Shown: piece after piece, positions 3,324-63,300 of the stretch | How the letters are laid out: each line of letters opens with the position of its first letter | Position numbering within the stretch: position 1 is the first letter of the stretch | DNA from: Basidiobolus meristosporus CBS 931.73 | Lineage: Eukaryota > Fungi > Basidiobolomycota | Assembly (NCBI GenBank): GCA_002104905.1 | Contig: MCFE01000513.1 | Span: forward strand, 199-64,198 | Direction of reading: 5' to 3' | DNA: 64,000 nt | The notes under the pieces: generated by a model | The model's database searches: none | What the model was told of the DNA's origin: nothing | Seen by the model: only the letters and a program-made list of their open reading frames with translations | Position numbers and translations under genes: made by a program

Positions 3324-3326
3324 GAA

Positions 3327-13736: not shown

Positions 13737-13753
13737 AATTATTTTTCATAGGG
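13737..13753 (-). repeat. Right TIR of EnSpm-like copy A
   Basis: Reverse complement ccctatgaaaaataatt matches the ends at 836 and 57088. Confidence 0.75.
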
Positions 13754-13756
13754 CAG

Positions 13757-14192: not shown

Positions 14193-14196
14193 GCAC

Positions 14197-17693: not shown

Positions 17694-18121
17694 CTTGTTG
17701 AGTGTGGGGTTGGGGTTAATGTTAGTGCAGGGTATAGGGACTTGCATAAGTCAATACAATTGGCAATTGAGGTACAACTGAAGTTTTGAAGGAAATAAAT
17801 CAATTTGTACACATGAAAAGTAAGAGGAATGGTTGAGTCAGGGAGTAAGGAGTGAGAAAAAAAGGCAATAGCCAATCAACACACCCAAACATAGGAGGTG
17901 ATAGTGTGTCCAGTATCAGAAAGTGAGCAAATTGGCAGGGAACCAATCAAAAGCCACTTCTGTATTGTTGTGATGAAAAATTTTGACTAAGTTTTTTGTG
18001 AAATCTGGGGTGCAATTATTTTTCAATGGTCTCTGGACAGTGTTCTGACAGGATCAGTACCACTTAGTCACAGGACTTTAACTTTGGACGGCCTTTTGAC
18101 ATATTTTTTCAACCATTCAAC

Positions 18122-24849: not shown

Positions 24850-26159
24850 CACATAATCAACTGTACTACTCAGCCAGTTAGGATGAAGACCAATTACTAT
24901 GAAGAAAACCTACAGTCCTTTACATTTGGAACTGTAAGTTTGGCCTTGTACTTGGAAAAACCTGGCTATTTTGTTGTAATCCATCAATCAACTGAAGATC
25001 CCAGGCTACTCAGATCCAGAAGGAAAATAATACCTATGATCTTTTACCTGCCAAACTGGATTTTAAGTTGGTCAATTTCAGTGTGTGTGAAATAAATGAT
25101 CTTCGCAAGACACAGTTCTGTAGAGCACCTAGATAGGTACCCAGATGTTCTTCATGATGATATACAGGACAAATTTTCTACTCCAGCATCCCAGAAGGTG
25201 CATTCTCATTTGAAGGAATATTCATATGTATTTTCAGAGAAACTCATAAGGCTACCACCAGTCAGAGGCATGGATCATGCCATTGACAAAGGAGATAGCA
25301 CTCCAGTCAGTAAGACACCTTACAGAATGAGTCCATTGGAGTTGGAATAGATGAAGAGACAAGCAGATTAGTTATCAGAGCAAGGATACATCAGACCCAG
25401 CAAGTCACCTTGGGGAGCAACAGTACTTCTTGCAAAGAAGAAGGATGTAGCACTCAGGATGTGCATTGACTACAGTGCCATCAACTCAGTTACCATGAAG
25501 AATAAGTACTCCATACCTTGGATTGATGAGCATTTGGACCAACACAATGGAGCTACAATACTCAGCAAGATTGACCTTATATCAGGGTACAACCAGATTG
25601 GGTGAAACCAGAAGACATCCCTAAGACAGCAATCAGGACCAGATAGGGATATTACAAGCTCCTAGTTGTGAGTTTTGGCCTTACCAATGCCCCTGCAACA
25701 TTCATGACCTTGATGCTAGCAGTCATCCTGGAATACAAGTTTGTGGTAATATATCTGGATGACATATTGATATGCAGCAAGATAGCTGAGAAACACTTGG
25801 TGCACGTTGAAAAGGTCTTGAAGAAGCTAAGAGAGAACAAGCTGTATGGTAAGCTAACAAAGTGTGCATTCTTGAAGGAACTTGTTGGGTACCTGAGACA
25901 CATAGTGACTAGTACAGAAGTTACCCCAGACCCAACAAAGATAGAAGTCATCAAGAAGCTGAAGCAGCTCCATAGCATATCAGAACTCAGATCATTCCTT
26001 GGAATGGTCTCCTATTATTGGAGATTTTTTAAGTCCTTTGCAAGTATTGCAGCCCCTTTAACTGATATTCTAAAGAAACACAACACCATGAGGTGCAACA
26101 GAACAAGTCTATCATATGGAAAATTCCACAAACACAATGGTCCTCAGATAATTCATATA

Positions 26160-34649: not shown

Positions 34650-35551
34650 CTTAAAGATTGCAGATTGTGCTACATGCTCTGGCACCGTACAATGGAATAA
34701 TTCTTATCTCTAAGTACAAGATCTTCCCAGATATTACCTGGACTCTCCACTAGTTGGTAAGTTTCAAATGGACATTCTCTGATGATCTTGAAAGGTCCTG
34801 TCCATTGGGTCTCAAACTTCTTCTGAGTGTTATTTTGCAGCAATACAAAGATCTTAACTCTCAATGGTTCTGGTGATATATTCCTATCAAATCTCTGCTT
34901 CATCTTTTCTACACTTTTATATATTCTGGCCTGTGCCTCTTAACATCTTTGTTCCAGCTGCTGGTGACTACTTGGCTGACTGAGCTCATCTTCTAAGGCA
35001 TCTGTAAGCTTTGGTTGTGTGAAATCTTCTGAAATCCTTGGCTTACATCCATACACTTAGTAATATGACAATTGCTTAGTGGTGTTGTGCACTCTAACTC
35101 TGTATGCAAAGAGTGCATGGTCTATATACTCATCCCATCTACTGACAGCTTCATTTGCATACTTGGTCAGCATTTTTCCATATAATCCATTAAACTGCTC
35201 AGTGACTTCATTAGTACTAGGATAATATGCCAAGGTTTTTGAGTGTCTGATGTGCTGCATTTCCAGGTAAGCTTCCAATGTCTTTGCTATAGACTTTGCT
35301 CCTCTATGAAGTTGAATCTCTACAGGGCATCTAAACTTCATAAGGATCTCATGGTAGATGAAACTTGCAACTTCTTGTTCACTGGGTACAGGTACTGCTT
35401 TAGCCACTGGCCATTTAGTGGCATGGTGAATTGCTACTAGAATCCAATGGTTGCATTTCCTGGTAGTTAGCAATCTTCCAATAAAGTCAGTTCCCCACCT
35501 TTCAAATGGTCTTATTGGCTCCAAGGGAAAGAGTTTGGCAAATCTCTGTGG
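34650..35551 (-). pseudogene. gypsy F-family integrase fragment
   Basis: ORFs 35057-35524 and 34670-34903 are homologous to 21358-22254. Confidence 0.85.
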
Positions 35552-37061: not shown

Positions 37062-37174
37062 CATCATGCTTCTAGAGAGCAGGTGAAGGAGCCAGTGGGA
37101 CTAAAGACTTCACCAGCCATATAGCATGTTGGGCCCTTTGACTACAGCAATACAACTTTGAGATAATTCACCAC

Positions 37175-38244
37175 TGTGGTGGTGTATAAGTCCAAGGGAG
37201 AGATATGTCCAACACTTCTGAAGTGTTTTGTGTGTGGGGTGCTCAATGGGTGCAATAACCTCCAGCAAAAGCTTGCTAGAAATACCTGGGTTTTGTCTCT
37301 ACACTAAAGTGAAGGGGATCAAAGCCACAAGCTTGTCAAGGGAGAACTACTGAGCAACAATCCCCAACTTGGTTGGTGTCTTAGCAAAAGTATGTGCTGG
37401 GCTCAACATCCTTTGAGATGACAATGTACTAAAGCTTCAAAGTCAAAACAACTGTAATATCCACCAGCAGGGACTTGATAAGAATGCAGCTGTGGACAAT
37501 AGTTACAAAGACAGAGAAGTATCTTTGCCTGTACATGAACAAACTTGGGAAAGAATCAAATGTAATAAAAGATACCTACTCTGAGTATTCCTCACAAGTA
37601 GTGCCTCCAAGGTCTATTGGCTGTCAGCATGGTTTCCTGGGAGTATCCTGTGGTCTGGGGTTGGAAGCTCTGGTAGAAGCAGGTAGCAGTGATCACACTA
37701 ATCAACAAGTTGGTATATGGATAAAAGGGATGATGATATACCGTCGAGGGATTGCCTCCTGTATATACTTTTCTCACTGGCTAAGCAAATAATAATCATG
37801 ATGTTCCAGAAGGTTCCAGATATCAATAGAAATCTTAATGACATTAGAATGAGCTAGGAGTACTCTAAGTAGGTGCCAGAAGGTTCTAAGAGGCAAAGCA
37901 CATCCAATCAATCAGGAATCAGTACTCTGAGATCTGTGTAGCATAGGGATACCATGTATGGTATGGAAACAGTAGGGATGGTAACACAGGTTAACCATGT
38001 GTCATAGGTGCTGGCATGGGTCCTTGCCCAATATAGAAGCACTTACAGCTAGTAATCTTACATAAGGTGAGAGACAACTTATGCAATAAGGTAAGCAGGT
38101 GTGATAGTCAGCCAGCTTATGGGATAGTACTTGTCAAGTAATACAAATGGGATAAAACTAAAATATGTATAATAGAGAAATAGAGAAGTAGAAAATATGG
38201 GAATGAGTACATCTGTTGGTGAGTGTCATTGTGTCCCCACTACA
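37175..38244 (-). mobile_element. Solo LTR (1070 bp), same family as 14197-15266; TSD CCAC/CCAT
   Basis: TG...CA ends; it interrupts the RNase H tail LQQYNFEIIHH|AGKKHQDADFL. Confidence 0.88.
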
Positions 38245-38449
38245 CCATGCTGGCAAGAAACATCAGGATGCAGACTTCCTTGGTTGCTATCCCATTTGCC
38301 AAATATGTATCAGTGATGATTACAAGGATGTAATATGCTTTAAAAAGAAGGGGAAGTATCCTAAATAAATTTTATAAACAAACAGAAGAGAGAATTTGAA
38401 AGGAAACAGTGTCAGTACAAAGTATAAGAAAATCACATATGGTTCCTTC

Positions 38450-39500
38450 AAGGACAGTTCAGAGCCAAGGTTCCCTGCTAGCTGCCTGCAAAGATGTCAT
38501 ACAAGAAAGGCATATGTCATTTGGGCATGCTAACCCCCTAACAATGTATAAACTGTTATGAAAGACATTTTTTTGGAAAACAATGATGACCAATGTTACA
38601 AATACATTACAAAGATGCACCACTTGCAAAAGACTCAACCGGAGTCAGAAGATAGGGACTACTGCACCAATACCAGTTGACCTACCCTTGCACTAAGTAG
38701 GGATTGACTTTGTTGGCCTGCTTATGAAAGCAAAAAAAGAGAACAATACATAATAAATGCTACCATTATTTTGCAAAGTGGGTAGGAGCCCAAGCCATCC
38801 AAAATAAAGATCAGTAGACAGTCACCCTTCTCATTCTAGAACACCTCATCAGCTGGCATGGATATCATCAGATACTCCTGTCCAACAATAGCGGTTTCTT
38901 CCTGAGCAAAACCGTGACCTACCTGGGCAAAAAGATGGGCATGAAACAGGTCCTCATGGCCACACATTACCCCCAGACTAATGGACTAAGCAGGAGGATG
39001 AACCAGACATGTTGCCTCATACTAGAGAAGCCTCACTGTGAACTTCCCCAATCATGGGCCAAGCTGCTCTCACTGACACTCCTAGCAATGTGCACCATAC
39101 CAAATAAAGCAATAGGTTTCTCCCCATATGTAATCCTATGTGGACAAGGCCCAAGTGGCATGAAGAAGCTGGATTGACAATGGAAGGTGCCCCCCTGACA
39201 ACACAGAGCAACTATGTAGAAAGGTTGATACACTGTATTGCTCACCTATACATAAAGGTATTCAAAAATGCTAACAAACACCCTCCCCCACCACCCAAAA
39301 GCAAGATACTAACAAGACACAAATGGAAACCAGGCAATAAGGTGTGGTATGACCAAACTGTTGCAGGCCTCAAGTTTTGCCCACAATTTACACCCTAATG
39401 GATTGGCCATTGCACTGTTATCAGTTTAGACCATGGACCAAAATACACCATTACCCTGAACAACAAGACAGTCAGCAACATAGTTCCAGCCCATCTGAAG
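38450..39500 (+). pseudogene. Integrase of element C, decayed; ends approximate
   Basis: H..FGH...CTTC zinc motif, VGIDFVG, HYPQTNGL. Confidence 0.8.
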
Positions 39501-41237: not shown

Positions 41238-44200
41238 CACAGAACCTGGTATAGATCTCCTCTAACATGTCAAGCAGAAATCCAGTGGTAGTGATGGGAT
41301 TGATGAGAAATAACCATGCAGAGGAGTAAGTCATATCCAAACAGGTATGTGATTGTGTGGAGGTGATTAGAATTAGTTTGGTGCAATCAGCTTAATTTAT
41401 CTGATTTTCCATGCATCATGATTGAATCTCCATCAATTGCCAAGAATCCCATCATTAAGTTGCAAAAAAAATCCTCAAACAATGACTTGGTGACTTTATT
41501 GATGATTTACTCATAAGTCTATCCAAATCTGCCACTATGGTCCCAATACCATGACTCAACACATCCTGAGTACAACCCAGAGAAAACTCATCTCCCAACT
41601 TACAAGTGTGGTCTGGCCTGGAAAAATCAATGTCAGATCAGTTTGAATTTGTACCAAATGATTATAGTATGGCCCACATGTCTATGATGAGTCTTCATAC
41701 AGATATGTAGACCTTACTCATTAATCTAGCAGAACTGGATACCTCAGAGAGCTGACAGAGATAGAAGAAGCTGAGTGGAATGCTGTGCCATGAGTTCTAC
41801 ATGAAGATGACAGCAGATGTATGTAACAAGATGCATAAAAAGACAAGTATTGAAATCAGGAATGAGCTGACAGTGAGGGGATTTGATGAGGAAGCCACAT
41901 GCAAACAATTCCACATGCAATTTGCACATTACAGACCAGATGCATTTGTTTGTGCCCCAACATTGGGAACCAAGGAGATCTTGAATGTGTTTTTGCCTCA
42001 AATGACTGATGTACTATATGATATATTAGTAGAGCTAAGTGGCTTCCAAGAGCAATACACACAGGACTCATCAAGGCAATAGTGCTAAGGTATTGAACTG
42101 AGGGTGAGTGTGTACCTTGAGGCATCAAAAGGCGAACTTTAAGAGAAAGAATAATGACTGCAAGTAACTGCGTCCAGATTGTGCCAGCATGCCTTGCTGG
42201 ATTCCTTACCATCCTCTGCAAATTCAGCATGCCAGCACATGTCAGTCCATTCTACACCAACACCCCTAATAATATACTTTTACCTAGTCTTGGCATTACA
42301 AACACATAGAATAGGTTAAGGAAGGTCCCAAGAACATGTGTGCAAAGTTTGGGGCTGTTTGGACAACTTTGAGAATTTTCATGTTCTGGGTACCTAGTAT
42401 TTTGGCAAAAATATTCTAAGTAAATCCCAACAAGGAATTTGGTCAATATTCTATAGGATATGAAGGTAATGATCTAAGTGACTAAGCTTGGTGAATATTT
42501 AGATGGAAATACAAATTTTTACAACACTCCCACTCAGCTAAATGTTCATACTGACTAGTCCTAATTTTGACCTAAGATATTCAGACTTCTCTCCAGCTAA
42601 TGGTTTGGTAAATATGTCCGCAATCTTTTCATCTGTAGGACAGTAAACTAAGCTAACTAAGTTATTCTCTATAGCTTCACATATGAAATGATGTCTAATA
42701 TCTATGTGCTTGGTTCTAGCATGAAAAGTTGAATTTCTACCTAATTGTATACATCCTTGATTATCCTGAAATAAAGTAATAGGCATTTTTTGACATAGGC
42801 CTAAATCTGTATAAAGTTTTCTTAACCACATTGCTTCTTTTGTAGCTTCACAGGCTGTCATATACTCAGCCTCTGTGGTGGAAAGTGCTACGGTTGGTTG
42901 CTTTCTTGAATTCCATGAAATTGCTCCTTTACAGTAAAGAAAGGTGTATCCTGTGGTGGATCTTCTGTCTTCTAAATTTTGTCCCCAATCAGCATCAGAG
43001 TATCCCACCAGATCCTGTTCTGAGTCCTTATAAGTTGTATCTTAAGCAGATATCAGCAGTTCCTTTTAGGTATCTAAAAATCTGCTTAACTGCTGCAATG
43101 TGATCAGATCCATAGTTTTGATTATGTTGGCTGACAACTCCCACTGAATATGAGATATCTGGACATGTTCCTAGTTTGATATACATCAGACTGCCAATCT
43201 TTGATTGATAAGCAAAGTCAGGGCTTTCAGATGGCACCAAGCTCTCTTGATTTGGTTGAGTTTTGATCAAGTTAAGGTTTGTCTCCATTTGGGTAGCTGC
43301 CAGTTTACAGTCTTCCATTTGGTACTTCTTTGGTATATCTTGAATATACTTGGATTGGCTTAGGGTGATAGTCTGGGTACTTCTGTCTATGAAGAACTTA
43401 ATCCCTAAGTAGTAATTAAGTTCTCCTTGCTTGGACATCTTGAGCTCTTTAGATAGGCTGGATTTAGTCTCTTTCAATGTTTCTAGGTTATTGGTGGCTA
43501 TAATAAGATCATCCAGATATAGAGCTAATAGAAATGGATTTGTTCTATATGGCTTATAGTATATACTATAGTCAGCATTACTCCTTTTGAAACTTGAAGA
43601 TTCCAAATAAGAATCTACCTTGCAATTCCAGGCTCTTGGTGATTGTTTGAGACCATATAGTGACTTTTTAAGCTTTCAGACCAAATGGGGGCTACCTTGG
43701 TCAACAAACCCATCAGGCTGGTCCATATACACATCCTCATCAAGTTCTCCATTCAAAAATGCAGCTTTTACATCCATTTGATGAATAAAAAATTTATATT
43801 TGGCTGCAATAGCCAATATTAATCTGATGGAATTAAACTTGGCTACCAGTGCAAAGGTTGCAGTATAGTCAGGTCCTTTTGTTTGAAAGCATTCTTTGGC
43901 TCCAAGTCTTGCTTTGTATCTTTCAATTGTACTATTAGCCCTGTATTTTGTCTTGAAGACCCATCTGCATCTGCATATCTTGATTTTTGGTTGATTGGTA
44001 ATTTGACTAAGTCCCAAGTTGATTTTCCATCAGGGCCTGATATTCCTCAGTCATTGCAGATCTACAAAACTTTGTCTGAGGGCTATTTGAGGCCTCTTTT
44101 ACAGTCTGGGGTTCATCAATATGGACTGAATGGGCATAGGCTAAGTTTGTACCCTCATTGATATAGTAAGTTGGGCTATTTCTTGTCCAATTGGATCTCC

Positions 44201-44678
44201 GGGCATTTGATACTGGAATGATCGCTTCTGGGATATTCCTGAGCACTGATTCTGGCTGAACCAGGATTTTAGAGTCCTCTGGAGTGAAAAAATTCTCATT
44301 GTTTTGCTCTGATTCAATCCTGACAATTGGTGGATTTAAGATCAGATTTTTGTCATCATCTGAAGGCATTTTTTGTAAAAATTTTGAATTTTCATCAAAC
44401 AACACATCCCTGGACTTGATTAGCTTTGTTGCTCTGGTATTGTAGAGTCTGTATGCCTTACTCTCATTGCAGTAGCTCAAAAATATGCATTTTACACTTT
44501 GTGACTGAAGTCTTGACTGATTTCCAGGCAGTTACTTGGCACATGCTGTACACCCAAATATTCTTAGATGTTCTGCACTTTGTCTGTATCCATACCATGC
44601 TTCAAATGGAGTAGAATTGCAAAGTATTCTGTTATAACTCCTATTTTTAAGATATACAGCAGTGGCAACTGATTCCGC

Positions 44679-45482
44679 TGTGGTAGGGTAAACATACCTC
44701 CCACAGACAAGTTTATTCATATAGTCATTATGACATACTTATCCATATTTTATCTTATCAGTATTATCCCATTCTTCTTTTGCCCATATTATCAGTACTA
44801 TCCCCATATGATGTTTACCCTGATTAGTTATTAACATTAGTTATCCCAGATGTTATTCAGCTTTGTGATCAGTAGATGTATCTATATAAGGCAAGTACCC
44901 GCGTCAGTACCCGTGACACATGACCTAGGTCTGTGTTACCATCTCTACCATTTCAATACCATATATGGTATTTCTATGTTGCACAGGTTTCAGACTACTG
45001 ATTCCTGATTGGTTGAGAGTGCTGTGCCTTTTAGAACCTTCCAGGACATTCTTGGCATATTTTTAGCTCATAGTGATGTCATCAAGAATTCCACTGATAC
45101 CTAGAATCTTCTAGAACCTTGTCATTAGTAATCACTTGGCAATCAGGAAAAGTATTTAAGGGAAAGCAATCCCTCATCAATAAATCATCCCTTCTATCAG
45201 TAACACTTCTACCTTATTGATTAGCAGTTGATCACTGCACCTGCCTTCAACAGTACATCTCAGACCTGCCATCAAGGAGCTTTTCAGGGTAGTGCACAAG
45301 ACACACAGAGGCCTTTGGAGACACTTGGAGCACCTAGGAAGCTAGAGAAGCAGGAGCTTTTACCATAGTGACATATTGACAAAGACACCAGCAGTTTAGA
45401 CACAGAGGTTATTGCACCCATCAGACACCTCACACACCTTGAGTTGTGTAGCTTCTCCCAGGAGTACCTCTACACCACCACA
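44679..45482 (+). repeat. 5' LTR of the Gag-PR element (804 bp)
   Basis: TG...CA; TATA-like gtatttaagg at ~45152 and aataaa at ~45179. Confidence 0.97.
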
Positions 45483-45486
45483 TATT

Positions 45487-45503
45487 TGGCACCCAACGTG
45501 GGG
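45487..45503 (+). promoter_or_regulatory. Primer-binding site, tRNA-Lys(1,2)-type
   Basis: tggcacccaacgtgggg versus the canonical TGGCGCCCAACGTGGGG; the single difference fits CpG decay. Confidence 0.85.
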
Positions 45504-45556
45504 GGTTTGACTTAACTGCTCCTAGAAGACTTAAGAAAGAACAAATTATCAAGACC

Positions 45557-47413
45557 ATGGATCTACCTTTACCAGGAATGCAAGGAACTCCTTTCTTTGA
45601 TGGAACCAAAGTTAAAGCTTTCATCAAGAGGTGGGAGCTTTTCTGCAGAGCCTACAAAATACCTGAGGCCATTATGGCTGAAGAGATGCCCCCCTACAGC
45701 ACTGATGAGATCATGCTCTCATTATATGAAAGAAATGATCTGCTGACAAATTGGACCCTCTTGAAGAGCTACTTGATTGATGAATATGGAGAGAGACAAG
45801 TTGACTACACACTTCAAGACTTGGAGAACTTTGCTTATAGCAAGTTTAAGCAGCTACCATTGAAAGAATACTTGAGTGGCCTTGAGCAAATTGGAGAGTC
45901 ACTGAAAGCCCAAGGCATTGTCACTGATCTGACTTTATCTGCCTATCTTCTCAGAGCACTACCAGAAGACCTGGTGAGAAGGATTGAAAACAATCCTACT
46001 GTGAAAGCTATGAGTTCACTGCCTGCATTTCAGTTAGCTAAGCAGATTCTACTTGCCCCTGAAGAAACCTCACCAATCAGAAAGCTTCTTTCAAGCTCAG
46101 CACAAAACCAAGATAGCCAAGACTTACTTCATCCCAGTAATCAAAGCACTCAAATTCAGGAGCTGACACAGCAACTAGAGAAACTCTCTTTGCTACTCAC
46201 CAGCAAAGCATATGGGCAGAAGCCAGTAGAGAAAGAAGTCAAATATACATGCATGTGGTGTGACTCTGCCAACCATTCCAAGAGAAATTGCCAAGAGCTT
46301 CAGTCATTACTATCCACAGGTGATGTCCTATATAGTCCTCAGGGATACATAGTCAGTAAGCATGGTGACAAATTATCCACAGCATTTGGACAAGGAGGAA
46401 TGAGAGTTCACTACAAGCAAGTCACCTCTCATACAAGAAAGGTTCAACTCCATGAAGGAGAAGATCCTGACTACTTTGATCCAGCTGAAGTTCTGAACTT
46501 TGATTATGAGGACCCCAGAGAGGCCCAAGATCATATAGCTTCAATTTATGCTTCAAAGAGACACCATCCTGAAAAAATGGCTAATCCAGGCCCAGCAACA
46601 AAAGTACCAAGATGTGAGCCAGAAGTTGTGATTGAGAAGAAAGCATCACCCCCATTAATTTTACAAGAGTCTGCCAAGGCCAACAACTACCACATGCAGC
46701 CTAGAGTCAAGCAAAATGGTACCCCAGAGGCTCTGACAAGTCATATACTAGGAAGCAACATATCAATCAAGGTTGGAGAGCTACTCAGTGTATCACCATC
46801 TGTAAGAAAGACTCTGGATGAGCATATCAGAATAAGAAAGCATCCAATTGAAGCAACTCAAGGCAACCAGGTCAGGACAGTTCAAGGAAGCCAAGATATC
46901 AGTAAGCTGCATCAAAGCCAGAAACACTACTACTCAGTGGCAACTGCAACAACTACAGGAACTGTGCATAATCAAGAAATCCTATGTCATATAGACAGTG
47001 GATCTGAGATATGTGTGATGCCTTTGGAGGCTTGGAAACAACTACCATGCAAAGACCTATTGCCCATAGACACCAATATCAATTGGAGCATGAAGGATGC
47101 CAACTCAGGGCAATCAAAGCTTTTAGGAATTATTCACAGCTTCCCTCTCATCATTGAAGGAATACCCCATGAGATCCCAGTATTCATTTGTGCAAAGGCT
47201 AACTTTGAATTACTTCTTGGAAGACCATGGGAAGTAAAAGCAAGAGCAACTGCAGTGAACTACCCAGATGGTTCAGCATGGTATACTATATACTCAGAGA
47301 GCCCAGGACTAACAGCAACCTTCTGTGGTGTGGACTCAAACAATATCCGATCAATGACATCATGTAGATTTCTATCTCAAGAAAGGACAGGTGGCTTCAT
47401 TGAGGAACACTGA
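45557..47413 (+). CDS. gag-pro: Gag-protease polyprotein, 618 aa, intact
   Basis: FDGTKV gag N-terminus; CCHC knuckle CMWCDSANHSKRNC; DUF4100-like segment (ILGSNISIKVGELLSVSPSVRK, recognised by eye); retropepsin motif HIDSGSEICVM and FELLLGRPW. Confidence 0.88.
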   Translation: MDLPLPGMQGTPFFDGTKVKAFIKRWELFCRAYKIPEAIMAEEMPPYSTDEIMLSLYERNDLLTNWTLLKSYLIDEYGERQVDYTLQDLENFAYSKFKQLPLKEYLSGLEQIGESLKAQGIVTDLTLSAYLLRALPEDLVRRIENNPTVKAMSSLPAFQLAKQILLAPEETSPIRKLLSSSAQNQDSQDLLHPSNQSTQIQELTQQLEKLSLLLTSKAYGQKPVEKEVKYTCMWCDSANHSKRNCQELQSLLSTGDVLYSPQGYIVSKHGDKLSTAFGQGGMRVHYKQVTSHTRKVQLHEGEDPDYFDPAEVLNFDYEDPREAQDHIASIYASKRHHPEKMANPGPATKVPRCEPEVVIEKKASPPLILQESAKANNYHMQPRVKQNGTPEALTSHILGSNISIKVGELLSVSPSVRKTLDEHIRIRKHPIEATQGNQVRTVQGSQDISKLHQSQKHYYSVATATTTGTVHNQEILCHIDSGSEICVMPLEAWKQLPCKDLLPIDTNINWSMKDANSGQSKLLGIIHSFPLIIEGIPHEIPVFICAKANFELLLGRPWEVKARATAVNYPDGSAWYTIYSESPGLTATFCGVDSNNIRSMTSCRFLSQERTGGFIEEH

Positions 47414-47477
47414 GAGAGCACTTTGTTCTCCAAACTTACAGTGGTTAGCTAAAAAGTTCCCTGAAACTTTTTAGCTC

Positions 47478-47491
47478 AAGTGGGGGGTGGA
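47478..47491 (+). promoter_or_regulatory. Polypurine tract of the Gag-PR element
   Basis: aagtggggggtgga immediately before the 3' LTR TG. Confidence 0.8.
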
Positions 47492-48295
47492 TGTGGTAGG
47501 GTAAACATACCTCCCACAGACAAGTTTATTCATATAGTCATTATGACATACTTATCCATATTTTATCTTATCAGTATTATCCCATTCTTCTTTTGCCCAT
47601 ATTATCAGTACTATCCCCATATGATGTTTACCCTGATTAGTTATTAACATTAGTTATCCCAGATGTTATTCGGCTTTGTGATCAGTAGATGTATCTATAT
47701 AAGGCAAGTACCCGCGTCAGTACCCGTGACACATGACCTAGGTCTGTGTTACCATCTCTACCATTTCAATACCATATATGGTATTTCTATGTTGCACAGG
47801 TTTCAGACTACTGATTCCTGATTGGTTGAGAGTGCTGTGCCTTTTAGAACCTTCCAGGACATTCTTGGCATATTTTTAGCTCATAGTGATGTCATCAAGA
47901 ATTCCACTGATACCTAGAATCTTCTAGAACCTTGTCATTAGTAATCACTTGGCAATCAGGAAAAGTATTTAAGGGAAAGCAATCCCTCATCAATAAATCA
48001 TCCCTTCTATCAGTAACACTTCTACCTTATTGATTAGCAGTTGATCACTGCACCTGCCTTCAACAGTACATCTCAGACCTGCCATCAAGGAGCTTTTCAG
48101 GGTAGTGCACAAGACACACAGAGGCCTTTGGAGACACTTGGAGCACCTAGGAAGCTAGAGAAGCAGGAGCTTTTACCATAGTGACATATTGACAAAGACA
48201 CCAGCAGTTTAGACACAGAGGTTATTGCACCCATCAGACACCTCACACACCTTGAGTTGTGTAGCTTCTCCCAGGAGTACCTCTACACCACCACA
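47492..48295 (+). repeat. 3' LTR of the Gag-PR element (804 bp)
   Basis: Identical to the 5' LTR except tcgg versus tcag (~47672 vs ~44859). Confidence 0.97.
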
Positions 48296-49371
48296 CCGCC
48301 CAGAAATCATAGGATAATTTTTGATCATTGATCATAGATCTTGCCATATCAATTATTGATCTGTTAGCACGTTCTGCTACTCCATTTTACTGTGGGGGGT
48401 ATGATACAGTAGTCTCTTGCTTTATCCCATGAATTTTGCAGAAGTAGATGAAGAGTTTTGAGGTGTATTCCCCACTACAGTCAGAGCATATTTTCTTTAT
48501 TTTTTCACCAGTTTCTCTCTCCACCATTGTCAGAGCATATTTTCTTGATTTTTTCACCAGTTTCTCTCTCCACCATGGCTTTAAACTCCCTGAACTTAGA
48601 CAGAACTTCTTCCTTTCTCTCCATGAAGTAGACCCATGTGTATCTTGTATAATCATCAATAAAAGTGATTAAATACTTAATCCCACCTAAGGATATATTT
48701 TGCATAGGTCCACACAGATCTGAGCGCATCAGATCTAATTTTTTCTTATTTTGATTAACCCAGAGCTCTTGAACGGTTGTCTGGCTTGTTTCCCATATAT
48801 GCAGGCTTTACAGTGCTCCAAATTAGCTGGGGGATCAATTTTTACTCTGGAAATTAGCTGATCTTTGATCATTTGCATAAATAATCAAAATTGATGTGCC
48901 CAAATCTCCTGTGCCAAAGCATTGTTGTTTCTTCATTTAATTTACTTATATTGCCTTCCAAATATGATGCAATATAAGTCAACTTGTATAGATTCTGATC
49001 TCTGATACCCAAAGCAATATGGGCACCATTTTGATTAGTGATCTTGTATCCAGAATTGTCAAAGCTGAAACTGAGTTCTTCTGCAGTGGTCTTGCTTACA
49101 GATAGTAGGTTCTTGGCTATTTCTGGTACATAGAGTACTTCTTTGAGAATCAGTGTATGGCTTCCTTCACTGCTTCTTAGGTTTACTTGGATAGTTCCTT
49201 CTCCCACTGCATCAAGTGTCCTATTGTCACCCATGAAAACCTTCTTAATTGGAATTTCTTGATATTGGGTAAAGAGTCCTTTTTGGTGTGTAAAGTGTTG
49301 AGATGTTCCAGAGTCAATATACCATGTCTGCAAATCCTTGTTAGTGGTCATATTTAGTGCAGATATGAATA

Positions 49372-50103
49372 AGACTTGTTCCGTTGGATGGTGCCACATT
49401 GAGCCATGAGTGCCAAATAGTGCCATTGAGTGTGAGAAAGGCATAGCAGACCTAAATTTGGCCGCAGAGTGTGAAACATTAATCTTCATTTTCATGCAAA
49501 GCAGCCCCTGTGATTCACCCATTGTGCTGGAGAAAATCCATTTTTTGACCTTTTTTTCTGGATCATTGTTGTGCAGGATGTGAAAGGGCACAGAAGAACT
49601 GAGACATGCATCTGGCACTCAATACCCATGGCACTCTGAATCTAGCTCCTGTGGCTTGTATCATGTCACAAAAATGCATGGCACTATCTTGGTCCACTGG
49701 TACTATCTGGCACTATAGGTGCTTTATATAGGTTTTACTTTAGGACTAATATTTAAATATAGTGCCAGATAGTACCAGTGGACCAAGAGAGTGCCATTCA
49801 TTTTTGTGACATGATACAAGCAACAGGAGCTAGATTCAGAGTGCCATGGGTATTGAGTACCAGGTGCATGTCTTCAGTCTTTCTGTGCTCTTTCACATCC
49901 TGCACAACATTGATCCAAAAAAAAGGTCAAAAAGTGGATTTTCTCCAGCACAATGGGTGAAATGCAGGGGCCACTTTGCATGAAGATGCAGAGCTATGTT
50001 TCACACCCTGTGGCCAAGTATAGGCTCCCTTAGCCTTCTTGGCACACTATGGCATTATTTGGCACTCATGGCTCAATGTGGCACTATCCAACAGAACAAG
50101 TCT
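49372..50103. mobile_element. Foldback/MITE element 1 (732 bp; 345-bp arms, 42-bp spacer), 3-bp TSD ATA
   Basis: agacttgttcc...gaacaagtct termini; arms at 49372-49716 and 49759-50103; ATA at 49369-49371 and 50104-50106; the copia flanks rejoin. Confidence 0.88.
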
Positions 50104-50921
50104 ATAATCTATCTTCAGTTGTTGCAGCATTTGCATATTCAGGCATTTTTTGCTGCTTATCTTTCTTTTTGAGACACTGGTTGGATGTGTGTCCTTTTCT
50201 TTTATAGTAGTTACAATACAGGTTGCTGTTGCCTTTGTAGGGATTTGGGTACCTCCTTTGTTGGTTATCATTGCTTATTAAAGCATTTTCTTCTTCTTTC
50301 TTATTTGCGCTTTATTTTCTTAATTCTTCATCCAGGAGCCTTCCATATATGTAATTTAAGGTCAAATTGTCAGTTCTGGACTCTAGGGCTGATACAAGGC
50401 CCTGAAACCTGTCTGTCAGGCTATTCAGGATGGTAACTATCACATCCTCATCAGTAGTTGGTACGCCCACAGATTCCATCTCATCAACCAGCAAGGTAAT
50501 TCTGTTAATTAGATTTTTCATTTCTTCTCCTGGCAGCATCTTTATAGTAAAGAATTTTCATCTCAGATACATTTTCTTAGCAGCTGAACATGACTGGTAG
50601 GTGTCTTCTAATGCTTTCCAGGCATTCTTTGCTGTTTTTGCTCTTGAGCATTGAATTAGCAATTTGTCCTTAACATTAAGACAAAAGCAATTAAAGGCAC
50701 TTTGTTCTTTCTTCTGGTACTTTAAGGCTTCCTCTCCAACGTTTTTAGGAGGGCATTCTTCTCCCATGACAGTATCCCAAAGGCCTCTTTCTTGTAGCGG
50801 CATCTTCATCTTCACCTTCCACACTTGGTAGTTAGATCCATCCAACTTCTCTGCAGAGGGAAAAATTCCAGTAATAGCTGTAGTAGACATTGCAGAGAGT
50901 GACAGCTTGGGGCACATAACC

Positions 50922-51270
50922 TGTTGTAAGACTCTTGGAGATATTGGAAGTGATTGGGAGGACAAGTAGATTATGTGGTTTTCACTTAATGATTTATTGA
51001 ATGTAAAAGTAGTATTTATACTTTTACCTGATCTTGGCATTAGAAATATGTAGAATTGGTTAAGGAAGGTCCTAAGAACATGTGTGCAAAGTTTGGGGCT
51101 GTTTGGACAACTTTGAGAATTTTCATGTTCTGGGTACCTAGTATTTTGGCAAAAATATTCTAAGTAAATCCCAACAAGGAATTTGGTCATTATTCTATAA
51201 AATATAAAGGTATTGATCTAAGTGACTAAGTTAGGTGAATATTAAAGTGGAAATACAAATTTTTATAACA
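50922..51270 (-). repeat. 5' LTR of copia B (349 bp)
   Basis: Reverse complement of the copia LTR, adjacent to the PBS. Confidence 0.92.
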
Positions 51271-51793
51271 CATTGGAGCAGGCCAAGTCATGCCAAAATG
51301 TAACACCACATTAAACTCAGCCAAGGGCTATCCCAACACATCACATCATGCCTGTGCATGCAAGCACACCTGAACATTAGAAAGTTACTTCTGGTGAACT
51401 GACTGGCAATGACCCATATGAAGTGCCTCCACCTCCAGAGCCTTTGGCAAGTAAGTGAATGTGACAGTGCATGGGACTTGAAGCTGGTTCTGTCATACTG
51501 TCTGGAGCAATTCAGCATGGCCAAGCTCCAGCATTGCACTCATCATCTAGGAGGTGATATACTGACTACAAGTACACAAGTAGCCAGTATGATTATCAAC
51601 AAGGAGGTGGTTCAGGTGCACAAAGTGAATCACTACCAAATTCTTCAGTAGAAATCCCTGTGAGAAAAAAACCTAGAAAAAGATGATGTGTTTGCATCAA
51701 GTGGTTACCATTTGTCATGATCCAACTAACACAGTTTTTTTGCAATCCAAGTCAAGCCACTGCAAATCAGTGATCACTAATTTCTGCTATAAA

Positions 51794-53663
51794 TGTTGTA
51801 GGAGTCTTGGAGATACTGGAAGGGATTGGCAGAACAAGTAGATTATGTGGTTTTCACCTAATAATTCATTGAATGTAAGCGTAACATGTGCACTTTTACA
51901 TAGTATTGGAATAACAAACATGTGGAGTAGGCTTAGGAAGGTCACCAAGAACATGTGTGCAAAGATTGGGGCTGCTTGAGCAACTTTGAGAATTTTCATG
52001 TTCTGGGTACCTGATATTTTGGTGAGAATATTCCAAGTAACTCCTTACAAGGATTTTGGTCATGTTCTCTGAGATTTGAAGGTAATAATCTAAGTGATCA
52101 AGTCAGGTGAATATCAAGGTGGAATTACAAATTTTACAACATCCCACTTAACTAAATGCTCATACTGACTGGTCCCAATTTTGATCTAAGATATTAGACT
52201 TTTTCCGTTGGATAGTGCCACATTGAGCCATGAGTGCCAAATAGTGCCATTGCATGCCAGAGAGGCATAGCAGACCTAAACTTTGCCTCAGAGTATGAAA
52301 CATAGCTCTGCATCTTCATGCAAAGCAGCCCCTGTGTTTCACCCTTTGTGTTGGAGAAAATCCATTTTTTGACCTTTTTATTTGGATCAGTGTTGTGCAG
52401 GATGTGTGAGAGGACAGAAGGACTGAAGACATGCATCTGGTACTCAATACACATGGCACTCTGAATCTAGCTCCTGTAGCTTGTATCATGTCACAAAAAT
52501 GAAAGGCACTCTCTTGGTCCACTGGTACTATCTGGCACTATATTTAAACATTAGCCCTAAAGTAAGACCTATATAAAGCACTTAGAGTGCCAGATAGTAC
52601 CAGTGGACCAAGAGAGTTCCATTCATTTCTGTGACATGATACAAGCTACAGGAGCTAGATTCAGAGTGCCATGGGTATTAAGTACCAGGTGCATGTCTTC
52701 AATTCTTCTGTGCCCTTTCACATCATGCACTACATTAATCCAAAAAAAAAGGTCAAAAAATGGATTTTCTCCAACACAATGGGTGAAACACAGGGGCTGA
52801 TCTGCATGAAGATGAAGAGCTATGTTTCACACTCTGTGGCCAAGCTTAGGCTCACTTGGCCTCCCTGGCACGCTATGGCATCATTTGGCACTCATGGCTC
52901 AATGTGGCACTATCCAATGGAACAAGTCTATTCACACTTGTCTCTAGCTAATGGTTGGTAAGTATGTCTGCAATCATTTCATCTGTAGGACAGTAGGCTA
53001 AGTTAGCTAAGTAGATCTTTATGGCTTCATGTATGAAATGATGTCTAATATCTATGTGCTTAGTTCTAGCATGAAAGTTTGATTTCTACCTAATTGTATG
53101 CATTCTTGGATATCTTGAAATAGAGCAGTAGGTGTACTTAACATAAGCCAGAATCTTTAGAAAGCTTCCTTAGCCACAGTGGTTCTTTTGTAACTTCATA
53201 GGCTGCCATATATTCTGCCCTATTGTAGAAAGTACTATGGTTGGTTGCTTTCTTGAGTTCCTTGAAACTGCTCCTTTACAGTTAAGAAATGTGTTTCCTG
53301 TGGTGATCTTCTGTCTTCAAAGTTTTGTCCCCAACTGGTATCAGAGTATCCCACAAGATCCTGTTCTAAATCCTTATAAGTGTATCTTAAGCAGATATCA
53401 GCAGTTCCTTTTAGGTATCTAAAAGTTCACTTAACTGCTGCAATTTGATCAGATCCATAGCTCAGATTATGCTGGCTGATAACTCCCACTGAATATGAGA
53501 TATTGGGACATGTCCAAGCATGATATATAGCAGACTGCTAACCATAGATTGATAAGGAATTTCAGGGCTTTCATATGGCACTAAGCACTCCTGATTTGAT
53601 TGAGTTTTAACCAAGTTAAGGTTTGTCTCCATTGGGGTAGCTGCTGGTTTACAGTCTTCCATT
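51794..53663 (-). mobile_element. Ty1/copia copy C, 3' fragment (RT end, RNase H, 3' LTR 51794-52141), hosting foldback 2
   Basis: LTR reverse complement, PPT adjacent at 52142, RNase H and RT homology up to ~53663. Confidence 0.85.
52196..52929. mobile_element. Foldback/MITE element 2 (734 bp; 346-bp arms, 42-bp spacer), 3-bp TSD ATT
   Basis: agact...aagtct termini; ATT at 52193-52195 and 52930-52932; the spacer is the reverse complement of the element 1 spacer. Confidence 0.88.
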
Positions 53664-54863: not shown

Positions 54864-55475
54864 TGGAACCTTCTGGAACACCATGATTAGTAATCACTTA
54901 GCCAGTGAGAAAAGTATATAAGGGAGGCACTCCCTCAACAATAAATCATCATCCATTTTATCAATATACCAACTTGTTGGTTAGTGTGATCACTGCTACC
55001 TGCTGCTACCTGAACCTCTAACCCCTGGCCACCAGACACTCCCAGGAAACCTTACTGACAGCCAACCAACCTTGGAGGCACTACTTGTGAGAAATACTCA
55101 GAGTAGGTATCTTTTGTTATATTTGATTCTTTTGCAAGTTTGTTCTTGTACAGGCAAAGATACTTTTCTGTCTTTGTAACTATTGACCAAAGCTGCATTC
55201 TTATCAAGTCCCTGCTGGTGGAGCTTAGAGTTGTTTTGACCTTGGAAGCTTTAGTACATTATCATCTCAAAGGATGCTGAACCCAGCACATACTTCTGTT
55301 AAGATGCCAACTAAGCTGGGGATTGTAGCTCAAAAGCTTTCCCTTGACAAGCTTGTGGCTTTATTCCCATCACATCAGATTAGAGACAGAACCCAAGTAT
55401 TCTAGCAAGCTTTTGCCAGAGGTTATTGCACCCAGTGAACACCCCACATACAAAACACCTGAGAAGTGTTGGATA
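54864..55475 (+). repeat. Fragment (~610 bp) of the 1070-bp LTR family; ends approximate
   Basis: Reverse complement of ~14220-14830 and ~37200-37820; includes gtatataagg and aataaa. Confidence 0.8.
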
Positions 55476-57088: not shown

Positions 57089-59417
57089 CTTCATGGAATA
57101 GTTCTAGGAGGGATACATGGAATGTGTCATGGACCTTCATACTTGGTGGCAACTGTGGTGGGTATACAATTGGACTAAGTTTCTTCTTGATCTTGAATGG
57201 CCCAAGTTTCTTGTACTGTAATCTATCACAAGGGTGGCTGGTAACATTGTTTCTTCTCAAGAGCCATACTGAATCACTTTCATTAAGCATGGGGCTAGGC
57301 TGCCATTTGTTGTCTGCAAACTTCTTGTACCCCTCATGGGCAAAGGATAGTTCTCTCTTGAGTGTTTCTTGGATTTCTAGAATTGCTGATGCATGTTGAG
57401 CTGCAGGGAGGCTCATAGGGTTTATTGGGATCTGAATATTGAATTGCAGATGAAAACCATAATTTGCATAGAATGGAGTGAGACCAGTTGCACTATGACA
57501 TGAGTTGTTGTAGGCAAATTATGCATGTGGTAGCAGCTGGGTCTAGTTGTCTTGCTGATATGTGATATAACACCAGAGGTATTGTTCAAGGATCTGCTTA
57601 ATTCTCTCTGTCTGACCATCTGACTGGGGATGAAAAGTGGTTGAGAGCTTGACTTGCACACCAAGATATTGCATGAAATGTTTTCAGAATGTTGGTATGA
57701 ACTGCGGTCCTCTATCAGATACAATGTCACTTGGGATTGCATGGAGCTAGAAAATGCTCTTGATTACTAGGTGGGCAGTCTCCTTGATGTCTATATTCTT
57801 GGAGCAGGGAAGGAAGTGAGCCATCTCTGTGAGTCTATCTGCCACTACCAGGACTGAATTGAATTGGCTGGATTCTGGGAGGTTAATAATGAAGTCCATT
57901 GAAAGTGACTTCCATTGCTGGTCAGGAATTGGCAAGGGCTGAAGAAGTCCAAATGGCTGGTGTCTAGCAGATTTTGCACAATTACATGTGTCACAGGATT
58001 GGAGGCACTCCTTGACAAGGGATATCATCTTGGGCCACCAGAAGTCTTTCTTGATTACATTCATAGTTTTGGCATGCCAAAATGCCCTACAGCCATTGCA
58101 TCATGGCAAGAATGGATGATTTCTAACTGGGTATCAAGGTCTGGGACAAACAGTTTGTGCTAGTGATAGATGATGTCATTGAATAGAGGTAGGTGCTGGA
58201 GGTTTGGTAACTTGGGTGGTGAGTCAGTGGGAGACTTGAGGCATTTCTTGACTGTTGCTGCTGTGGAGTTGGTGGCTTGGCTGGTCTTGACTTTCTCAAG
58301 GAGTAAAGGAGCTATAATACTGAAGGACTGGGCTGCAAGGAGCTCAAAATGTCTTTTGTTGAGTACAGGGTTTTCCATTTGCCAACAGGCATCATCCCCT
58401 TCTTCAAGGGAATACTCCATCTTTCGGTACAGGGCATCAGGTTTTCCTTGTTTCACATCTGGTCTATTGGTTATAACTAAGTCAAAGCTAGATAGGAAGA
58501 GGCACCATCTGGCATGTCTCTGTTTCAGTACCTTTGAGGTGGTAAAGTACTCAAGGTTCTTGTGGTAACAGAAGCTCTTTGTCTTTTTGGCTGCACCATC
58601 AAGGTAGTGTCTCCATTAGACTTGTTCCATCATTCCAGCTGATCATAGTGCCCAATAGTGCCATAGCATGCCAGATGGTGCCTGATCATGCCACAGAGTA
58701 CCAGATGGTGTCATACAGTGCCAATTTGGGATCAAAATTGACATGCATATGACCCTAAAATATTAAATTAATAACAAAATATACAGCACTTTCTGGCACT
58801 GTGATCAATGGCACAATGGAACAAGTCTACTGTTCAAATGCAACAATGATTGAAAGCAGCACTTTAACATAGATATTATAGTTTACTTTGGCTGGAGTAA
58901 ATTTTCATGAGTCAAATACATTAGGGTGTAGCACATTCTTGTCATTGTATTGGGAAAGGATGGCACCAAGGGCAAAGTTGGAGGCATTGGTCTCTATGAT
59001 GAAAGGTCTCTCAAGGTCAGGGTGGGCCAGCAGTGGGGCACACAAGAAGGATTTCTTGATAGAATCAAAGGACTCAGACTGTTCCTTATGCCAGGTAAAG
59101 GGAAGATTTTTCTGGGTGAGCTTTGTCAAGGGAGTGACTATCTTGGAGTAGTTGGTAATGAATCTACCATAAAGTTAGCAAATCCAAGGAAGGATTGGGG
59201 TTCTTTTACTGACCAGGGAGCTTTCCAGGATTGGATGGCTCCTACTTTCATGGGCTCCATTCTTTTTCCACTTGAGCTTACAAGATAACCTAGGAACTCA
59301 ACTTCTTTCTGGTCAAACTAACATATTTCCAGTTTGGCATAAAGGCCAGTGGTGACAAGCTTGGTCAAGACTTTCTTCACATGGGAACTATGTTCTTCTT
59401 GAGTCTTGGAGTAGATT
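57089..59417 (-). pseudogene. pol: Ty3/gypsy (chromovirus-like) pol fragment: RT end, RNase H, integrase; truncated on both sides
   Basis: IYSKTQEEH...; FIIETNASNFALGAILSQ; KDFWWPKM...CDTC; SMDFIINLP; SDRGPQF; GPFKI...HDTFHVSLL. Confidence 0.85.
58618..58828. mobile_element. 211-bp mini-element sharing termini with the foldbacks; TSD ATT/ACT
   Basis: agacttgttcca...tggaacaagtct; removing it restores RNase H AFEQWRHYL on the minus strand. Confidence 0.8.
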
Positions 59418-60344
59418 TGTTGTAAAAATTCATATTTCCACCTAAATATTCACCTAACTTAGTCACTTAGATCATTACCTTCAAATCCTAGAGAATACCA
59501 ACCAAATTCCTTGTTGGGATTTACCTAGAATATTTTTGCCAAAATACCAGGTACCCAGAACATGAAAATTCTCAAAGTTGTCCAAACAGCCCCAAACTTT
59601 GCACACATGTTCTTGGGACCTTCCTTAACCTATTCTACGTGTTTGTAATGCCAAGATCAGGTAAAAGTATAGATACTACTTTTACATTCAATAAATCATT
59701 AAGTGAAAACCACATAATCTACTTGTCCTCCCAATCACTTCCAATATCTCCTAGAGTCTTACAACAGGTTGTGAGCCCCAAGCTGTTACTCTCTGCAACA
59801 TCTACTACTGCTATTACTGGAATTTTTGCTCTGCTGAAAAGTTGGATGGATCTAACTACCAAGTGTGGAAGGTGAAGATGAAGATGCTGTTACAAGAAAG
59901 AGGCCTTTGGGATACTATCATGGGAGAAGAATGCCCTCCTAAAAACGTGGGAGAGGAAGCCTTAAAGTACCAGAAGAAAGAACAAAGTGCCTTTAATTGC
60001 TTTTGTCTTAATGTCAAGGACAAATTGCTAATTCAATGCTCAAGAGCAAAAACAGCAAAGAATGCCTGGAAAGCATTAGAAGACACTGACCAGTCATGTT
60101 CAGCTGCTAAGAAAATGTATCTGAGAAGAAAATTCTTTACTACAAAGATGCTGCCAGGAGAAGGAATGAAAAATTAAATTAACAGAATTACCCTGCTGGT
60201 AGATGAGATGGAATCTGTGGGCATACCAACTACTGATGAGGTTGTGATGGTTACCATCCTGAATAGTCTGACAGATGAGTTTCAGGTCCTTGTATCAGCC
60301 CTAGAGTCCAGAACTGAAGATTTGACCTTAAATTATGTATATGG
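59418..60344 (+). mobile_element. Ty1/copia copy D, 5' part (LTR 59418-59766, PBS, partial gag), interrupted by copy E
   Basis: 349-bp LTR, PBS ggttgtgagccc, gag ORF 59842-60177. Confidence 0.9.
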
Positions 60345-63300
60345 TGTTGTAAAAATTCATATTTCCACCTAAATATTCACCTAACTTAGTCACTTAGATC
60401 ATCACCTTCAAATCCTAGAGAATACTGACCAAATTCCTTGTTGGGATTTACTTAGAATATTTTCACCAAAATACCAGGTACCCAGAACATGAAAATTCTC
60501 AAAGTTGTCCAAACAGCCCCAAACTTTGCACACATGTTCTTGGGACCTTCCTTAACCTATTCTACGTGTTTGTAATGCCAAGACCAGGTAAAAGTATAAA
60601 TACCACTTTTACATTCAATAAATCATTAAGTGAAAACCACATAATCTACTTGTTCTCCCAATCACTTCCAATATCTCCAAGACTCTTACAACAGGTTATG
60701 AGCCCCAAGCTGTCACTCTCTGCAATGTCTACTACTGCTATTACTGGAATTTTTCCCTCTGCTGAAAAGTTGGATGGATCTAACTACCAAGTGTGGAAGG
60801 TGAAGATGAAGATGCTGCTACAAGAAAGAGGCCTTTGGGATATTGTCATGGGAGAAGAATGCCCTCCTAAAAACATGGGAGAGGAAGCCTTAAAGTACCA
60901 GAAGAAAGAACAAAGTGCCTTTAACTGCATTTGCCTTAATGTCAAGGACAAATTGCTAATTCAATGCTCAAGAGCAAAAACAGCAAAGAATGCCTGGAAG
61001 GCATTAGAAGACACCTACCAGTCATGTTCAGCTGCCAAGAAAATGTATCTGAGAAGAAAATTCTTTACTACAAAGATGCTGCCAGGAGAAGAAATGAAAA
61101 ATCTAATTAACAGAATTACCCTGCTGGTAGATGAGATGGAATCTGTGGGCGTACCAACTACTGATGAGGATGTGATAGTTACCATCCTGAATAGCCTGAC
61201 AGACGAGTTTCAGGGCCTTGTATCAGCCCTAGAGTCCAGAACTGAAGATTTGACCTTAAATTACGTATATGGAAGGCTCCTGGATGAAGAATTAAGAAAA
61301 TCAAGCGCTAATAAGAAGGAAGAAGAAAATGCTTTAATAAGCAATGATAGCCAACAAAGGAGATACCCAAGACCCTACAAAGGTAACAGCAACCTGTTTT
61401 GTAGCTACTGCAAAAGGAAAGGACACACATCAGACCGGTGTCTCAAAAAGAAATATAATCAGCAAAAGAAGCCTGAATATGGAAATGCTGCAACAACTGA
61501 AGATAGACTATTCATATCTGCACTAAATATGACCACAAACAAGGATTCTCAGACGTGGTATATTGACTCTGGAGCTTCTCAACACTTTACACACCAAAAA
61601 GAACTTTTTACCCAATATCAAGAAATTCCAATTAAGAAGGTTTTCATGGGTGACAATAGAACACTTGATGCAGTGGGAGAAGGAACTATCCAAGTAAACC
61701 TTAGAAGCAGTGAAGGAAGCCATACACTGACCTTTAAAGAAGTACTCTATGTACCAGAAATAGCCAAGAACCTACTCTCTGTAAGCAAGGCCACAACAGA
61801 AGGACTCAGTTTCAGTTTTGACAATTCTGGATGCAGGATCACTGATCAAAATGGTGCCCATATTGCTTTGGGCATCAGAGATCAGAGTCTATACAAGTTG
61901 ACTTATATTCCATCATATCTGGAAGCCAATATAAGTAACTTAAATGAAGAAACACCAATGCTTTGGCACAGGAGATTTGGACACATCAATTTTGATTATT
62001 TGCGCAAAATGATCAAAGATCAGCTAATTTCTGGAGTGAAAATTGATCCCCCAGCTAATTTGGAGCACTGTGAAGCCTGCATATATGGGAAACAAGCCAG
62101 ACAACCGTTCAAGAGCTCTGGGTTAATCAAAACTGAGAAAAAATTAGATCTAATTCACTCAGATCTGTGTGGACCTATGCAAAATTTATCCTTAGGCGGG
62201 ATGAAGTATTTAATCACTTTTATTGATGAGTATACAAGATACACATGGGTCTACTTCATGGAGAGAAAGGAAGAAGCTCTGTCTAAGTTCAGGGAGTTTA
62301 AAGCCATGGTGGAGAGAGAAACTGGTGAAAAAATCAAGAAAATACGCTCTGATAATGGTGGAGAATATACCTCAAAACTGTTCATCCACTTCTGCAAAAT
62401 TCATGGGATAAAGCAAGAGACTACTATACCATACTCCCCACAGCAAAATGGAGTAGCAGAACAAGCTAACAGATCAATAATTGATATGGCAAGATCTATG
62501 ATCCATGATCAAAAATTATCCTATGATTTTTGGGCGGAATCAGTTGCCACAGCTGCATACCTTAAAAATAGGAGTTATAACAGAATACTTCGTGATTCTA
62601 CTCCATCTGAAGCATGGTATGGATACAGACCAAGTGCAGAACATCTAAGAATATTTGGGTGTACAGCATATGCCAAAAAACTGGCCGGAAATCAGTCAAA
62701 ATTTGAGCCAAAAAGTGTAAAATGCATATTTTTGGGCTACTGCAATGAGAGTAAGGCATACAGACTCTACAATACCAAAGCAAAGAAGCCGATCAAGTCC
62801 AGGGATGTGTTGTTTGATGAAAATTCAAAATTTTCACAAAAAATGACATCAGATGATGACGAAAATTTGTTCTCAAGTCCACAAATTGTCAGGATTGAAT
62901 CAGAGCAAAACAATGAAAATTTTTTCACTCCAGAGGACTCTACAACCGTGGTTCTGCCAGAATCAGTGCCCAGGAATATCCCAGAAGTGATCATTCCAGT
63001 ATCAAATGCCCGGAGATCCAATCGGACAAGAAATAGCCCAAATTACTATATCAATGAGGGTACAAACTTAGCCTATGCCCATTCAGTCCATATTGATGAA
63101 CCCCAGACTGTAAAAGAGGCCCTAAATGGCCCTCAGACAAAGTTTTGGAGATCTGCAATGACTGAGGAATATCAGGCACTGATGGAAAATCAAACTTGGG
63201 ACTTAGTCAAATTACCAATCAACCGAAAATCAATTGGATGCAGATGGGTCTTCAAGACAAAATACAAGGCTGATGGTACAATTGAAAGATACAAAGCAAG

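Follow-up and report, generated by a model that had tools for sequence, protein, structure and literature searches.

We analysed a 64,000-nucleotide stretch of the Basidiobolus meristosporus CBS 931.73 genome (positions 199 to 64,198 of contig MCFE01000513.1, hereafter the window), in which positions 44679-48295 of the forward strand are occupied by a retroelement with two direct long terminal repeats (LTRs) and a single open reading frame (ORF) for a Gag-protease polyprotein. The 5' LTR (44679-45482) and the 3' LTR (47492-48295) are each 804 bp long, run from TGTGG to CCACA and are identical at 803 of 804 positions by repeat finder and direct alignment, the sole mismatch, at position 181 of the LTR, being an A in the 5' copy (44859) and a G in the 3' copy (47672). 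TATATAA (LTR position 205) and AATAAA (LTR position 501) are plausibly placed for a U3/R/U5 layout. Four nucleotides past the 5' LTR lies a primer-binding site (TGGCACCCAACGTGGGGG, 45487-45504, forward strand), which matches the 3' end of tRNA-Lys(CUU) at 17 of 18 positions and is tentatively assigned to this tRNA; no tRNA gene with which to compare the site was found in the window. At the other end of the interior a purine-rich polypurine tract (AAGTGGGGGGTGGA, 47478-47491) abuts the 3' LTR, and one base 5' of this tract is a hairpin with a perfect 12-bp stem (AGCTAAAAAGTT...AACTTTTTAGCT, 47447-47476). The interior between the LTRs measures 2009 bp and contains one ORF of 618 aa (45557-47413), the longest in the window, which begins with an ATG in an ACCATGG context and ends in a TGA stop 78 bp short of the 3' LTR. 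Folding of the leader gave no significance against shuffles, and the fold of the 78-nt tail was likewise not significant (z -1.4). A sequence-only reading of the stretch had described the LTR pair with its single mismatch, the polypurine tract, the stop-free 618-aa ORF with its 78-bp distance to the 3' LTR and a tRNA-Lys primer-binding site; all of these were recovered, with the qualification that the assignment of the site to tRNA-Lys is tentative.

The element is flanked on both sides by CCGC (44675-44678 and 48296-48299), as had been proposed for a perfect 4-bp target-site duplication, and it interrupts the integrase region of an old Ty1/copia copy that lies on the reverse strand (42273-51271). 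Two paralogous Copia copies are colinear across the insertion point and carry the uninterrupted sequence ...GATTCCGCCCAAAAATC... with a single CCGC (8493-8496 and 62534-62537, both on the reverse strand), and the two flanks of the element, when joined through one CCGC, yield this empty-site sequence. Because both paralogs keep the uninterrupted single-CCGC site, the duplication is no chance match and the element arrived by integration; its TG...CA ends and 4-bp duplication mark a true insertion made through an integrase-type reaction. With direct LTRs ending in TG...CA, a short target-site duplication, a primer-binding site at the 5' LTR and a polypurine tract at the 3' LTR, the element is an LTR retrotransposon.

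The insertion is recent. Since its LTRs are 99.9% identical, as against approximately 93% for the LTRs of the host Copia copy (42273-42527 and 51017-51271, reverse strand), the Gag-protease element is much more recent than the sequence around it. The single mismatch over 804 bp corresponds to a Jukes-Cantor distance of 0.0012, or an age of roughly 0.05-0.6 million years if between 1.3e-8 and 1e-9 substitutions per site per year are assumed. The LTR identity agrees with the youth that had been ascribed to the element.

The ORF is predicted to encode capsid (CA), nucleocapsid (NC), a spacer and protease (PR), in this order, corresponding to the first third of a gypsy polyprotein that is encoded in one ORF. 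A profile search of the ORF, which had been suggested as a check with DUF4100, gag-asp_proteas and zf-CCHC in view, gave Pfam matches that stayed below threshold: a DUF4100-like stretch between NC and PR (residues 371-428, 46667-46840) scored 23.3 bits against a curated cut-off of 27.9, Asp_protease reached an E value of 0.016, and zf-CCHC was not reported by the Pfam scan of the ORF. The DUF4100 match was also seen in two related proteins (P0005 and P0007). Because the Pfam matches are sub-threshold, the Gag and protease assignments draw on homology to full-length polyproteins and on predicted structure.

An exhaustive HMMER search with the ORF, over 1.84 billion representatives, returned 679 matches, the best of which has an identity of about 27% (E 4e-39); the named top matches belong to the Harpellales fungi Smittium and Furculomyces. 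In one relative of 1656 aa (P0010), residues 21-634 align to residues 14-603 of the ORF, and the Gag-PR part is followed by RVT_1 (803-968), RNase H, Integrase_H2C2 and rve, an arrangement shared by P0005 and P0014. Alignment of 20 homologues showed conservation up to about residue 600 of the ORF, with invariant or nearly invariant positions at C232, C235, H240 and C245 of the nucleocapsid zinc knuckle (CX2CX4HX4C, residues 232-245, 46250-46291), at the catalytic D480 (for it and the knuckle residues, at least 90%) and at G482 of the DSG active site (residues 480-482, 46994-47002), and at G555 in LLGRPW (about residues 551-556), a motif within the protease. No similar protein of 0.55-1.75 times the ORF length was found in the homologue search. 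Exact-protein look-ups returned no record for the 618-aa ORF or for a neighbouring 452-aa integrase ORF, a protein search with the latter gave matches of at most 60% identity, the 618-aa protein is absent from a collection of 15 billion proteins (where its best match is 27% identical), and scans of metagenomes with peptide patterns and with the 29-nt junction of LTR end and primer-binding site gave no match.

The AlphaFold2 model is consistent with this domain order. A confident helical region (residues 1-171) is followed by a long helix (196-218), a unit comprising the knuckle and a small beta structure (230-290), a largely disordered stretch that includes the DUF4100-like part, and a confident beta domain (463-600). 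Residues 1-171 (45557-46069; pLDDT 83-97) form two helical lobes that we assign by structural alignment to the N-terminal and C-terminal domains of a capsid (CA-NTD and CA-CTD), and alignment to retrotransposon capsids covers both lobes (VIA-align). The closest structures are dArc1 (Z 9.6), the dArc2 capsid (Z 8.8; 156 residues aligned, root-mean-square deviation 3.7), the CA-CTDs of PEG10 and Ty1 (Z 8.2-8.8), the Ty3 capsid (Z 8.3) and PNMA2 (Z 8.0); helical folds may match by chance in this range of Z, and the top of the list consists almost entirely of capsids. For the beta domain, which we assign to a retropepsin protease (46943-47356), Foldseek matched the RVP domain of DDI1 (E 5e-8) and HIV-1 protease (TM 0.76-0.78), and a family profile searched against the PDB matched the protease of Ty3 Gag-Pol (E 8.8e-10). 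The knuckle, the DSG site, the predicted folds and the homologues bear out the earlier assignment of the ORF to a gag with a CCHC knuckle and a DSG protease, and its homology to Ty3/gypsy polyproteins over nearly the whole length of the ORF supports the gypsy-type affiliation (Metaviridae).

No reverse transcriptase (RT), RNase H (RH) or integrase (IN) was found between the LTRs, where tblastn with six full-length relatives matched only residues ~21-660 of these proteins; in the relatives, RT, RH and IN follow one another in the gypsy order. Only 78 bp are left after the ORF, as the sequence-only reading had stressed in concluding that the element has no room for Pol, and the other RT or integrase matches of the window are unrelated decayed gypsy fragments (21373-23375, 25378-26081, 34688-35446, 38496-39150 and 57183-59398). 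Because the three enzymes are missing from its interior, the element is a pol-deleted, non-autonomous derivative of this lineage that cannot copy itself and needs Pol in trans, which supports the need, as earlier proposed, to borrow Pol.

Related loci indicate how this state may have arisen. In two Smittium relatives (L001 and L002) pol follows directly after gag-PR. The first of these (Smittium culicis LSSM01000760.1, 5652-11946) has LTRs of about 350 bp that are 96.6% identical and a 5.6-kb gag-PR-RT-RH-IN interior; in the annotation it appears as two pieces, a 'hypothetical protein' of 579 aa and a fragment of 166 aa. Two short Smittium proteins (P0007, 579 aa; P0002, 837 aa) were considered as possible Gag-PR-only relatives and rejected, as both loci run into RT, RNase H and integrase. 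Since these short proteins front pol-bearing elements, the pol-bearing form is ancestral and the Basidiobolus element a deletion derivative. From the alignments, the 5' breakpoint of the deletion would lie after about residue 603 and the 3' breakpoint in the 78 bp before the LTR.

We therefore consider it likely that the locus holds an LTR retrotransposon that depends on a helper and goes back to a Ty3/gypsy element with one ORF, from which everything 3' of the protease as far as the polypurine tract was lost. Judged by its sequence, it has kept all cis signals for another round of transposition, namely the LTRs, including their TATA box and AATAAA, the primer-binding site and the polypurine tract. 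Structure and integration are observed, and the steps of the life cycle outlined here follow established LTR-retrotransposon biology. The 5' LTR would drive an RNA of ~2.8-3.1 kb serving both as messenger for Gag-PR and as genome, and Gag-PR would build particles round its own RNA (preferential packaging) that its own protease would mature. RT, RNase H and integrase would be brought in by the Gag-Pol of an autonomous relative, the two Gags co-assembling. A tRNA at the primer-binding site would prime reverse transcription, and the helper integrase would recognise the TGTGG...CCACA ends and insert the cDNA, duplicating 4 bp of the target. The pol deletion would most likely be older than the present insertion, so that the element would already have lacked pol when it was copied.

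Several observations weigh against a helper-dependent element of this kind. The 64-kb window contains no second copy of the LTR or of the ORF, and no helper candidate with a related Gag, tblastn of the ORF matching only itself. The intact ORF says nothing about selection, since at 99.9% LTR identity it is expected from youth alone. Finally, the ORF may encode a dominant-negative Gag that hinders a helper and does not cooperate with it. The single copy in the window would also fit a one-off deletion derivative, in which pol dropped out of a full-length Ty3/gypsy copy, through template switching in the reverse transcription that produced the present copy or through a deletion after insertion, and the pol-less form was never recopied. 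LTR elements often undergo internal deletion, and youth suffices to explain the intact ORF and LTRs; such a deletion would, however, have spared exactly the primer-binding site, the full Gag-PR frame with its stop codon and the polypurine tract, and we regard this explanation as rather unlikely. In a further arrangement, which we think improbable, the locus would be one half of a split two-component system, in which Gag-protease-only units with an LTR lineage of their own supply capsid and protease, other units supply RT and integrase, and, in distinction to a simple parasite with a self-sufficient helper, each partner would need the other.

The capsid evidence also bears on a possible role in interference. 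Gag without Pol can poison helper particles, as is established for Ty1, and the capsid model matches the CA-CTDs of Ty1 p22 and Drt2 and the CA-like CTD of PEG10 (Z 7.6-8.8), so that the ORF could be mainly an interfering or restricting protein, or one on its way to becoming a host gene, like Ty1 p22, Drt2 or mammalian Gag-PR genes such as PEG10, instead of serving a parasite of Pol as its structural gene. Complete cis signals, LTRs that are almost identical and a target duplication that is still fresh speak against this, as does the position of the locus in a nest of decayed transposons, and nothing points to a conserved, orthologous host locus. We therefore give it very little credence as the main function, with the proviso that interference would not rule out parasitism. 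In a region as highly repetitive as this one, a pol region collapsed or skipped in the contig might leave a similar structure; nothing direct favours such an assembly artefact, the ORF runs unbroken through the region to a stop, and homology to the relatives is colinear up to residue ~603, which makes an artefact the most far-fetched of the explanations considered here.

Related LTRs occur elsewhere in the window. A second, older lineage has LTRs of about 1.07 kb with the termini TGTAGTGGGG...CACCACA, whose terminal bases are near-identical to those of the element LTR and which are 73-77% identical to it over the promoter and R core. One, a solo LTR, is flanked by the 4-bp duplication GTGC (14194-15269, reverse strand), a second copy lies at 37172-38247 (reverse strand), and a fragment lies at 54866-55473 (forward strand). 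The presence in the window of these related older LTRs, one with its GTGC duplication, indicates that the lineage has long been active in this genome, and they could stem from a relative or from a former helper. We considered them as markers of a helper and dropped them, because they are solo or partial LTRs with no related gag or pol next to them. A large inverted duplication (836-6152 versus 11276-18099), whose right-hand copy is interrupted by the solo LTR at 14194-15269, is 85-89% identical over ~5.3 kb and holds an ORF with a match to Transposase_21 (CACTA/EnSpm-type tnp2) at 11225-11869.

The host Copia copy retains recognizable domains on both sides of the insertion. Pfam matches were obtained to RVT_2 (43679-44017), SH3_retrovirus (an SH3-like integrase C-terminus; 44010-44480), Pol_BBD and gag_pre-integrs (48872-49618) and Retrotran_gag_2 in gag (50561-51190), and integrase-core-like sequence was recognized by eye in an ORF at 48387-48659. 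Two units of ~750 bp (49358-50117 and 52189-52934) each match their own reverse complement at 85-86% and one another at 87-88%; they look like foldback-type elements, and one of them is inserted in the host Copia copy. Further downstream, positions 59418-61272 are a 927-bp tandem duplication (95.8% identical) of the 5' end of a Copia copy (LTR and start of gag); the remainder of that copy follows and reaches the end of the window.

Taken alone, a single pol-deleted copy would be ordinary. If the pol-less form proves to be a young multi-copy family with intact Gag-PR, it would offer, within an early-diverging fungus, a clean natural setting in which to ask by what means a non-autonomous LTR element obtains Pol in trans, whether possession of its own capsid and protease leads to preferential packaging of its own RNA, and whether elements of this kind exploit their helpers or damp them. 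Annotation would also be affected, as pipelines that demand RT or integrase would miss or misclassify so recently active a family.

Comparison with known systems places the element among non-autonomous LTR retrotransposons that retain some coding capacity. Its Gag-PR is homologous over nearly the whole ORF to that of full-length Ty3/gypsy elements of Zoopagomycota (Smittium culicis L001; P0010), with E values down to 4e-39 and the same order of CA, CCHC knuckle, DUF4100-like stretch and PR. In those elements, however, RT, RNase H and integrase follow and the interior extends to ~5.6 kb, whereas the Basidiobolus interior is 2.0 kb and the ORF ends ~15 residues past the last conserved post-protease residues. 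Ty1 p22, Drt2 and PEG10 resemble it as capsid-fold proteins expressed without Pol, with CA-CTD matches at the Z values given above (7.6-8.8), but they are truncated products or host genes devoid of transposition signals, whereas here the protein is part of a complete mobile unit. LARDs, TRIMs and Tca1 of Candida albicans (for Tca1, PMC7175516) likewise keep LTRs, a primer-binding site and a polypurine tract and depend on Pol; they have no coding capacity, and the intact 618-aa Gag-PR ORF sets the element apart from LARDs and TRIMs, which are defined by a non-coding interior.

Closer parallels are found in plants. TR-GAGs, as cited in PMC13570524, have LTRs, a primer-binding site, a polypurine tract and one ORF for a structural protein, lack replication enzymes and are presumed to be mobilized in trans, all as here. 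According to the same account they keep gag only, whereas the present ORF adds a complete retropepsin whose DSG site is intact, and thus a potential for self-maturation, so that the element is TR-GAG-like in its presumed working and lies outside the strict definition of a TR-GAG. A 2026 study of sugar beet described 28 LTR families with only GAG/PROT domains and likened them to the TR-GAGs of Coffea, Arabidopsis and Triticeae (PMC13570524). These families are similarly Ty3/gypsy- or Ty1/copia-related, carry GAG and protease only and are treated as non- or semi-autonomous, and the Basidiobolus element, which keeps GAG and PROT and lacks RT, RH and INT, falls within this class. We found no description of a fungal GAG/PROT-only LTR element in the literature searched, a limited library that gives no proof of absence. 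The kind itself is less new than the sequence-only reading had supposed, because GAG/PROT-only families, beyond the gag-only TR-GAGs, are already known in plants (PMC13570524). The sugar beet families are plant elements with many copies and often decayed domains, in contrast to the one examined copy described here, which has an intact ORF and whose nearest relatives are fungal (Harpellales, ~27%). The element thus joins a kind known from plants, apparently in an early-diverging fungus.

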